DNA of 64,000 nt from Bugula neritina (taxonomy: Eukaryota; Animalia; Bryozoa), in NCBI GenBank assembly GCA_964035545.1, contig OZ037771.1, positions 6,047,190 to 6,111,189 of the forward strand. Reading direction: 5' to 3'. This document shows positions 13,001 to 16,000 of this stretch, piece after piece. Position 1 is the first letter of the stretch. Each line of letters opens with the position of its first letter. The notes under the pieces were generated by a model. That model was not told the DNA's origin and did no database searches. It saw nothing but the letters and a program-made list of their open reading frames with translations. The position numbers and the translations under genes are program-made.

Positions 13001-16000
13001 TCTTGACCGTATAAAACCAAGTGAATCCAAATGGCTGGTTGCAGGTAAATTTAAAAAGGTTTGAATTTTTATTTGACTTTAGTGTGCAAGTTTAAACACG
13101 ACTACAATCCTCATCCTGGAGGGTTAACATACCTTGGACCTGAAAGTGGTGCTGTCATCAGCTGACAAGGCATAGCAGAACACCTCCACCTTACTTTTGT
13201 CATGCATGCCCGGTATACTCTGCATCAAATGTGATGTCGGGTGATTACCAAAGTCAGAGCTGACATACCCAATTCTCAGACGTCCTGTTAATAGAGATAC
13301 GAGCAATGCATTAACTACCCACCACAGTGTGTCACAGGGAGTATTGGCAGAGTTTTTGAGTGGCAAATAGGCTGGAAACACAAGTTTTAGGCTGGCAGAA
13401 GTGAGCCAACTCGAGAGTCATACCATGAAATCGAGCAATAAACAGAAAATAACTGGGAATCTCACATTCAGCTGTTACGAAGTAAATGTAGTGAGGTCTA
13501 CTATCAAACACTACTCTGTATATAAGTAGGGTTAGCGAATCCTCTCTTAGATTAATTTGGCACATGTTTAAATCTCTTAGATGAGTAAACACCTAACAGA
13601 GGTTATGCAGTGCACCTGGTACTACCAACGTATGACTAGCAATACATACCACCAGGAGATGCCAACTGAGTGGGGTGTGTATAAGCTCCCCTGCGGAGTA
13701 TGACTATCTTTTCCTGGCAGAGTGTGGCATGCCTACTGGCTATGCCTTTTCGCTGATCAGCTGTTAGTGGGTACAGCATACTATGGTGGGGATGAACTGA
13801 AGGTAGCCGGTTCTTCTTCAGCTGGTCAGAAACTATGTCAACGAGCTTCTGCATTCTCTCATCATAGTCCGTCCAGTCACACACAATCTACAAGGCAGGT
13901 AGGCGTCAGTTTACTGGTGCTGACAGATCATGTGATGTAAGATTCAACATTACCATTGTTCAACTGTTGGCACTGTAGCTAACTGGTGCTGTTAGTATTA
14001 TAGCCTCACTGTAACACAGTTCAAATCATACTCAAACCACTACCTCATTTAACTCACCTGCAGACAGTGTGCCAGATTGCAGAAGGCATCAGGGAAGTCC
14101 GGCTTGAGTTTCAAAGCCATGCGGTAGCTTTGTATGGCATCTTGCACGTTGCCACTGTCTTTGTGTATGCTTGCTAGATTGCTGTGTGCATCAGCAAATG
14201 CTGGGTTAATCTGTATAGCCCTGGTATAGCACTGCATGGCACCCTGGACGTCCTGCATTTCCTTCAGCGTGTTACCCATGTTAGAGTAAGCATCAGCAAA
14301 TGTAGGCGATATCCTAGTATACAATAACGACCACGATAAACTCAGCAAGTCACAACATCTTAGAACAAGGATATGAAATGTTAATAGGTTAGAATGTAAA
14401 GTTATGCCCAGTTCAATATAGCATGGAGCACCAAGGAATACATCAATACTTTATGATAAACCGCCATGCAGAACCAGTTGACAAAAAGGACATGCCAAGC
14501 AAACAATAAAAGCGACAGGAAATGACAGCTACAAGAGAATGTGTGAGGGGCAGTTACCTGATAGCTTCTTGGTAATGTGCTAATGCCTCTTGCAACTTGC
14601 CTTGCATTTGCAGGATGCTAGCTAGGTTAGAATGTGCAGCAGCAAACTCAGGAAATACCTAAAACCCAGTGGTTACAAGCATAACTGGAAGTGAACACAG
14701 ACGCCCACAATGCACCTCAACCATGCCAGGTACCAGGGTAGGGACTGGCTGCATGTAGCCAACCCTTCCCGGCAGTCATAGCGCATGCTAGTCAGGCGGA
14801 GATGAAGCCAGAGTATAGCAAACTATCACAGGAGATAGTGGTGACAGGTAACAAGGTAACAGTGAATAGTACAGGCCAGAATAATGCACATACATGAACT
14901 GTAGGCTGACCAATTCAAAGGACAAGACAGTTAATGTTGGGAGTAAGCATTAGCTGGACCAGCACCCCTGGGCTAATAGCACAAGCTGCATAGTGCACAT
15001 GCATGCCCTACGATGTTGCAGCACTGGTATAGTATACTGATCCAGTAACCAACCTAATAGCCTCCTTATAATGCCTCAGTGCATCGTGCAGGTTACCTTG
15101 CTGCTGCAACACACTAGCTAAGTTTGAGTGTGCAACAGCAAACTCTGGGTACACCTGAAATACACATTGCCCATGATCTACAGACCTTACCATATCACAG
15201 AACAGTGTTTCGAGGGCACTCGGGGCCCAGTTGCACATATTGTTTTATTACTAATAGAGGGAAAAATATTTTAGTAAACTATTTATGTTTTTCTATATAA
15301 AAAGAACTTGCTGGGAGAGTTTACTAACAAGGCCAGTTGACTTTACCTCTAAAGCCTTCATATACAGTCGTACAGCTTCTTCAGTGTTGCCTTGCTCCCT
15401 TTTGATATTGGCCAGGTTATTAAGGGAGTCGGCGTGTGTAGGGCAGAGCCTCAGTGCTGTGTTGTACATATCTTCTGCTTCTTGAACCTGTTCAATCATT
15501 GTATTATAGCTTATGTACTACTGGAGCTCAATAGTTGATTCACTTAGTTATAGTTTCCTCTATACTTTTTATTCACTCAATAAATTAGCTGAAATAGAGG
15601 ATGATTTTGCAGTACAAAATACTAAGCCTTTAAATCCTATCTTTCAATTAGTGAAGAGTCTCAACAGATAGTTTCAACAGCAATATAGCAGATTTCTGGC
15701 AGCTCATTAGTTTTCTAAGAAGGCTAAGCATATTAATATTTAGACATATATAATTGTATATAATAGAGATGTGGAGACATAAATTCATATGTGTTGGTGT
15801 CAAACAATACAAACACAGAAGTAAATTTAAATGTTTCAAATGATATAGCAACGTTTGACACCCATATTGCTAGTAGAGTTGCAATATGGGCTCTAATCGG
15901 TGCATACTATCTAATTATTACCTTAGTAGCGCAGCTTACCTTGCCTTTCTCTTTCAGGGCATTTGCCAGATTGCAATATGCATCAGGAAAGTTGGACTGC

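Follow-up and report, generated by a model that had tools for sequence, protein, structure and literature searches.

The window, a 64,000-nucleotide stretch of Bugula neritina DNA, carries the OGT gene on its minus strand, between ~19000 and ~10040. The exons in this interval translate to OGT, and the identity of the locus was assigned from the translation together with PDB matches to human OGT, in which a TPR array with its asparagine ladder is followed by the GT41 catalytic domain. The Pfam family Glyco_transf_41 is recorded on the downstream exons of OGT in relatives. A preliminary description of this DNA, made from the letters of the window, noted that OGT is normally single-copy, in agreement with the genome assembly (216 Mb, 321 contigs), where OGT is found once: exon 10 has a single true match, and its remaining matches are TPR look-alikes, ~30% identical, that contain stops. 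A search of positions 9800-19300 against Rfam returned no family at the gathering score. The exon numbers 8 and 10 used below are those of the present analysis; the numbers in the preliminary description are one higher, probably reflecting one more 5' coding exon.

Two tandem exons of 101 nt, referred to here as copy A and copy B, lie between exons 8 and 10. All of the following features are on the minus strand. Exon 8 (15347..15487) is constitutive, was delimited from RNA contigs and ends with a complete codon; the contig end at 15489 continues into the preceding exon. It is separated by an intron of 192 nt (15155..15346, GT..AG) from copy A (15054..15154), the first base of which is codon position 1 and the last base of which falls two bases into a codon. 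A 395-nt intron (14659..15053, GT..AG) separates copy A from copy B (14558..14658), which has the same phase, and a third intron of 244 nt (14314..14557) leads to the constitutive exon 10 (14058..14313), whose first base is the third of an Arg codon that starts in whichever copy is used. A repeat search of the window recovered the pair as a direct repeat of 109 nt, 14556-14664 against 15052-15160, with 72% identity, and the introns that flank the two copies do not align to each other. An AG directly precedes each copy, and a GT directly follows it.

The two copies encode the same TPR. The best match to human OGT is identical for both, namely residues 356-388 of 7yea_A and residues 38-70 of the crystallised fragment 3pe3_A. 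This stretch contains Asn366 (human numbering), a member of the asparagine ladder (PMC12569812), and both copies keep it. The A and B peptides are identical at 24 of 33 residues and differ at the other 9, and neither frame contains a stop. Copy A has Tyr2, Val7, Val15, Gln18, Asn21 and Lys30, the type found in the sole copy of molluscs and nemerteans, and copy B has Phe2, Ala7, Ile15, Met18, Lys21 and Gln30. The preliminary description had reported two tandem exons for one TPR, differing at 9 of 33 residues, with open frames, canonical splice sites and the ladder asparagine retained in both, and every one of these statements can be read from the sequence.

Because the exon length is 101 nt, inclusion of both copies or of neither shifts the reading frame and leads to an early stop. 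With A spliced to B, the reading of B begins one base late and runs into a stop at the 12th codon of B; with exon 8 spliced directly to exon 10, translation of exon 10 starts at its first base and runs into a stop at the 7th codon. Both stops had been noted in the preliminary description. Only inclusion of a single copy therefore yields OGT.

Splicing was assessed in public RNA data. Twenty public runs contain the stretch, and four of them from four studies (X1, X2, X3 and X5) were mapped to positions 14050-15520. The depths of X2 and X3 are identical, so these probably represent a single data set deposited under two entries, and the four runs amount to three independent sets. The data are assembled contigs rather than raw reads, and the joints given below thus report presence and not level, tissue pattern or per-molecule exclusivity. 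Some of the runs that contain the stretch are labelled as symbiont metagenomes. The introns at 15155-15346 and 14314-14557 have zero contig cover, which identifies the contig material as spliced RNA. The joint of exon 8 to A (15347/15154), that of A to exon 10 (15054/14313) and that of B to exon 10 (14558/14313) are present in all four runs, the joint of exon 8 to B (15347/14658) occurs among the four in X5 only, and the joint of A to B (15054/14658), with both copies included, is found in X2 and X3. At every joint the skipped part ends in GT..AG. The junctions expected from the preliminary description are thus in place in all four runs for both sides of A and for the downstream side of B, and in one run for the upstream side of B. 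The inter-copy intron 14659-15053 lies under contigs in all four runs (for example the piece 14557-15082) and is the sole retained one among the three introns. A form consisting of exon 8, A, the intron, B and exon 10 must consequently exist, and it meets a stop just after A. The existence of both-in and intron-retaining RNAs indicates that the choice between the copies is leaky.

The pair is not confined to Bugula neritina. Relatives were reached through gene-caller ORF fragments on genomic contigs and through an exon-peptide alignment scan of metagenome contigs, and the two copies and their neighbours, exons 8 and 10, were located in them by local tblastn. For comparisons the natural transcript L016 and the database proteins P0144 and P0262 served in place of an assembled splice model; the vertebrate-type loci L029, L033 and L034 and the vertebrate-type proteins P0007, P0025, P0051, P0055, P0132 and P0139 were excluded from comparisons and trees. 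Five further lineages (L012, L017/L018, L019-L022, L023 and L096) have the two copies in tandem, ordered as in the window and flanked by AG/GT, and the 101-nt length with AG before and GT after is seen in the window and at six other loci. L096 corresponds to chromosome OY755167.1 in assembly GCA_963576615.1, from the cheilostome bryozoan Watersipora subatra (PMC12902671), in which exon 8 is 96% identical to that of the window. Together with the 216-Mb genome and the symbiont-metagenome labels of RNA runs, this identity suggests a cheilostome source for the window. RefSeq holds two proteins of this species, XP_067948698.1 and XP_067948699.1, each of 1054 amino acids, which diverge at 9 residues within 360-391 and nowhere else. 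One contains the A-type exon and the other the B-type exon, and both exons stand in tandem in the genome; the two isoforms are hence already present in public automatic annotation. A metatranscriptome contig (L016) from the species of L019, a sister species, has copy B spliced in frame between exons 8 and 10, and its ORF of 874 amino acids extends to the C-terminus. The contig joints, this transcript and the Watersipora isoform pair agree that both copies are spliced between the same neighbouring exons, as the preliminary description had proposed. A full-text literature search found no paper that reports OGT exons as duplicated or mutually exclusive. Tandem-duplicate mutually exclusive exons are a well-known kind of arrangement, and OGT is a new and unexpected gene for it.

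Comparison of the six lineages that carry the pair indicates that each copy has been retained as protein-coding sequence. The mean pairwise pS is 0.75-0.84, near saturation, and the pN/pS ratios are 0.063 (A), 0.090 (B) and 0.041 (exon 10). As judged from these ratios both copies are under purifying selection, like the neighbouring exons, and neither is decaying in the relatives, an outcome that goes against the possibility, raised in the preliminary description, that one of them is a decaying pseudoexon. Six positions consistently distinguish A from B, with fixed differences in all six lineages. Exon position 2 is Tyr in A and Phe in B, position 7 is Val in A and Ala in B, position 15 is Val in A and Ile or Met in B, position 18 is Gln in A and Met in B, position 21 is Asn in A and Lys or Gln in B, and position 30 is Lys in A and Gln or Asn in B.

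The duplication is old. In a tree built from the 33-residue peptides, the A exons cluster together with support of 94/79, as do the B exons with 86/77, and since the exons group by copy and not by species the duplication predates the split of these lineages; the alignment is short and leaves the deeper branches without resolution. The search in other phyla that the preliminary description had suggested revealed, in addition to the five bryozoan-type lineages, a like pair in the brachiopod Lingula anatina (L097), with an A-type exon at 7186-7286 followed by a B-type exon at 7769-7869, each 101 nt long with AG/GT sites. The Lingula copies differ from one another with pS of 0.68 and pN of 0.089, have unrelated flanks and show the bryozoan-like Tyr/Phe, Val/Ala and Val/Ile differences. 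The Lingula annotation holds the B-type protein only. A third, partial Lingula copy, at 7001, has the same sequence as its neighbour and adjoins an N, and is for that reason probably an assembly artefact. One A-type exon each is present in the nemertean Tubulanus (L098), in the gastropod Batillaria (L099) and at L015, and a single exon of other types is present at L009, L010 and ~70 metagenome loci. A single origin of all B exons, including that of Lingula, is neither supported nor rejected (AU p 0.35). On balance we lean towards a common lophophorate origin of the pair, at odds somewhat better than even.

A candidate for control of the choice emerges from short motifs in the introns. Four GCAUG motifs are present in the inter-copy intron, starting at 15006, 15002, 14788 and 14726 on the minus strand, and the next intron, downstream of B, contains two more, with starts at 14495 and 14469 (same strand). 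Over the six lineages GCATG ranks 1st of 1024 5-mers in the inter-copy intron, with 13 seen against 3.6 expected and occurrences in all six, and it ranks 5th of 1024 in the intron after B. Dinucleotide shuffling gave P of ~0.004 for the window and ~0.003 for L012. The first GCATG lies 37-50 nt downstream of copy A in four of the six lineages, and the positions of the motifs are not aligned between species. Over the whole window TGCATG is not enriched; the signal is GCATG and is local to the introns of the cluster. The Fox-1/Rbfox family binds (U)GCAUG, is conserved across metazoans and switches mutually exclusive exons (PMC2777236, PMC2880598, PMC3585155). The motif enrichment suggests that the choice between A and B may be set by a Fox-1/Rbfox-type factor acting on the GCAUG motifs. 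A search of the genome with the Pfam domain Fox-1_C, which is poorly suited to exon-by-exon search, gave no match.

Other devices that could make the two exons exclusive were considered. The inter-copy intron, at 109-506 nt across seven loci, is too long for steric hindrance, and incompatibility of U2 and U12 sites was rejected, as all sites are GT-AG and no U12 donor motif is present. The preliminary description had pointed to a GC-richer inter-copy intron with hairpins at ~14736-14770 that might enforce exclusivity. The composition was borne out in the window, where the GC content of this intron is 0.49 against 0.36 and 0.39 in the flanking introns, and only loosely so in relatives. A local hairpin is likewise present at 14731..14774 on the minus strand, in both the MFE and the centroid folds, and it speaks in favour of exclusivity through competing pairings between a docking site and selectors: the allele in contigs X1-X3 has five clustered changes there and still folds (-24.8 to -29.5 kcal/mol). 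There is also a perfect complementarity of 11 nt between the exons, 14635-14645 with 15098-15108. However, clustered changes of this kind are also the expected product of template switching in a quasi-palindrome, and the hairpin is not conserved in the relatives examined. The fold of the whole inter-copy intron is no better than that of shuffled sequences in two species, with z of -0.77 for the window and +0.28 for L012, and no inverted repeat is common to these two. Alignment of the window introns with those of L012 recovers just two short blocks, the 11 nt that immediately precede copy B and 10 nt close to the acceptor of exon 10, and across the lineages there is no alignable block except the 3' splice region of copy B. 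A regulatory role for the hairpin is thus without support, and docking/selector control of the Dscam type, rejected here for want of conserved complementary intronic elements, is very improbable.

The reading that we favour, exactly one of two functional exons being used in each productive transcript, was weighed against three further explanations of the pair as such. That the duplication is an artefact of assembly can be dismissed almost with certainty. The copies are just 72% identical and have unrelated flanks. Two further contigs of the window species, L013 from a JGI metagenome and L014 from Logan, contain both copies with identical peptides, and both are also present in RNA contigs and in the five other lineages. 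Nothing was found in favour of an artefact in the window, and the duplication withstands the doubt expressed in the preliminary description, given that two independent assemblies and the RNA contigs carry both copies. It is scarcely more credible that one of the copies contributes no useful protein, as a pseudoexon or poison exon. The joint of exon 8 to B in one of four Bugula neritina runs and the annotation of the B-type isoform alone in Lingula would fit such a role, yet frame, length, AG/GT sites and near-identical peptides are kept in both copies despite saturated synonymous sites, and in-frame full-length transcripts include B in L016 and each of the copies in RefSeq. These conserved copies and in-frame transcripts largely refute the pseudoexon interpretation. 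A more serious proposal, though still an improbable one, is that the pair serves mainly for dosage control, the two proteins being equivalent and part of the pre-mRNA being diverted into out-of-frame forms. Retention of the inter-copy intron alone, in all four runs, and the presence of the both-in joint speak for it, and human OGT is itself controlled by unproductive splicing (PMC11507684). The six copy-specific residues fixed in six lineages, together with the low pN/pS of each copy, point instead to selection at the protein level for each version, beyond what dosage control alone would need. A dosage role could exist alongside the isoform role.

The best explanation of the observations as a whole, to which we assign a probability of about 85%, is that swapping A and B, as a tandem-duplicate mutually exclusive pair, yields two full-length OGTs. 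Purifying selection has maintained the pair in six bryozoan-type lineages or more, and a like pair is present in Lingula. The pre-mRNA is spliced either as exon 8-A-exon 10 or as exon 8-B-exon 10, the joints of both forms having been observed, and the resulting isoforms differ solely at 9 residues of the TPR that carries Asn366. In the mechanism that we propose, the frame rule and, presumably, nonsense-mediated decay would remove the wrong combinations. Direct splicing of A to B may be inefficient, in keeping with the observed retention of the intervening intron, and an Rbfox-type factor might bias the choice through the GCAUG motifs in the inter-copy intron and in the one that follows B. The substrates or partners bound may then differ from one isoform to the other. 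A wider scenario, in which lophophorates (bryozoans and brachiopods) have possessed since their common ancestor a tissue-regulated, Rbfox-driven swap between two specificity versions of OGT whose leaky products act as a dosage valve, is speculative and on the whole doubtful.

The lumen of the TPR array binds unfolded substrate stretches, with the asparagine ladder gripping the backbone and the aspartate ladder and its neighbours reading side chains (PMC11145291); the ladder aspartates of neighbouring repeats are D328, D396, D430 and D464 (PMC12569812). Exon position 7 corresponds to residue 362, which lies four residues before Asn366, in the register of the aspartate ladder; copy A has Val there, and both copy B and human OGT have Ala. 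Following the usual TPR numbering, we take exon positions 7 and 18 to be TPR positions 2 and 13, on the concave helix that faces the lumen, and positions 21 and 30 to belong to the turn and the outer helix. As positions 7 and 18, two of the six at which the copies have fixed differences, would then be on the lumen-facing helix, a specificity switch is plausible, and the isoforms may differ in their choice of substrates or partners.

Adjacent homologous exons of which exactly one is kept are likewise found in egl-15 (5A/5B) and unc-32 (7a/7b) of C. elegans and in vertebrate FGFR2 (IIIb/IIIc), and in the pairs controlled by Fox-1/Rbfox, (U)GCAUG lies in the flanking introns and the swap alters a binding surface (PMC2777236, PMC2880598, PMC3585155). 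Unlike those pairs, the one described here is in OGT, its unit is one TPR of a superhelix of 13.5 repeats, and the involvement of Rbfox is suggested by motif enrichment alone. Isoforms of OGT exist in mammals, where ncOGT, mOGT and sOGT derive from one gene and have the same catalytic domain with differing TPR parts. The mammalian forms vary in the number of N-terminal TPRs, whereas here the number is constant and a lumen-lining repeat near the catalytic domain is swapped. Teleosts also have two OGT proteins, one of them in Esox lucius being named 'tandem duplicate 1'; there the whole gene is duplicated, in contrast to the one 101-nt exon inside a single-copy gene reported here. Intron detention and the decoy exon of human OGT similarly leave part of the pre-mRNA unproductive and intron-retaining (PMC11507684), but the retained intron in the bryozoan gene sits between two alternative exons.

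OGT is the sole enzyme that adds O-GlcNAc to thousands of nuclear and cytoplasmic proteins, and two standing problems are how a single OGT selects its substrates and why there is only one in animals (PMC12569812, PMC11145291). With this pair a deeply conserved gene joins the list of those with mutually exclusive exons, together with a candidate regulator motif. The pair constitutes a natural, long-conserved experiment in which two versions of OGT differ in one TPR near the catalytic domain. A comparison of the isoforms, or of human OGT into which the six residues are grafted, would show how far this repeat steers the choice of substrates and partners.

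The reference sequence and a 523-nt RNA contig differ at 17 allelic positions, five of which fall inside a 28-nt span (14743-14770) of one hairpin in the intron between copies A and B, the two alternative TPR exons of OGT. These five clustered differences yield a more perfect hairpin and could represent either compensatory change or a template-switch mutation. The coding sequences of the two copies also share a perfect 11-nt complementarity, between 14635-14645 in copy B and 15098-15108 in copy A. It was looked for in L012, a Logan contig of a relative with the tandem pair, and was not found; thus, the complementarity is probably due to chance.

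In L012 (positions 2593-3210), exons 10, 11 and 12 run together without introns, and the introns flanking the alternative pair are present. Either the species has lost the introns between exons 10, 11 and 12, or the contig derives from partly spliced RNA that keeps the introns of the cluster alone. In L016, which comes from a metatranscriptome of the sister species, splicing is complete from exon 5 on. About 1.5 kb of non-coding sequence (L016 positions 1-1501) precede that exon and look like a retained intron at the site of the long intron at 18100-16545 of the window. This sequence is a candidate detained intron, of the kind known from human OGT.

Three separate OGT introns of the window contain one recurrent stretch of ~140-170 nt on the minus strand (13592-13450, 11910-11768 and about 10700-10630), and two of the three copies are nearly identical. 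An Rfam search over 9800-19300 returned no match at the gathering score. On the plus strand, from about 32000 to 63000, open stretches carry a SYTANLAA pore motif together with segments resembling ligand-binding domains, which suggests that OGT has as its neighbour, on the opposite strand, one gene or two for ionotropic glutamate receptors.

The draft assembly of the brachiopod Lingula anatina contains a partial third exon copy (L097, positions 7001-7087) that ends at N. It is identical to the next copy, upstream intron included, and is probably an assembly duplication flanking a gap. Among the OGT proteins compared (P0146-P0232) and the loci of the nemertean Tubulanus (L098) and the gastropod Batillaria (L099), the sole exon is of the A type (Tyr2, Val7) in molluscs and a nemertean, and carries Phe2 and Ala7, as in the B type, in arthropods and deuterostomes. 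Each of the two bryozoan copies is therefore similar to the one exon that a different group of animals has.
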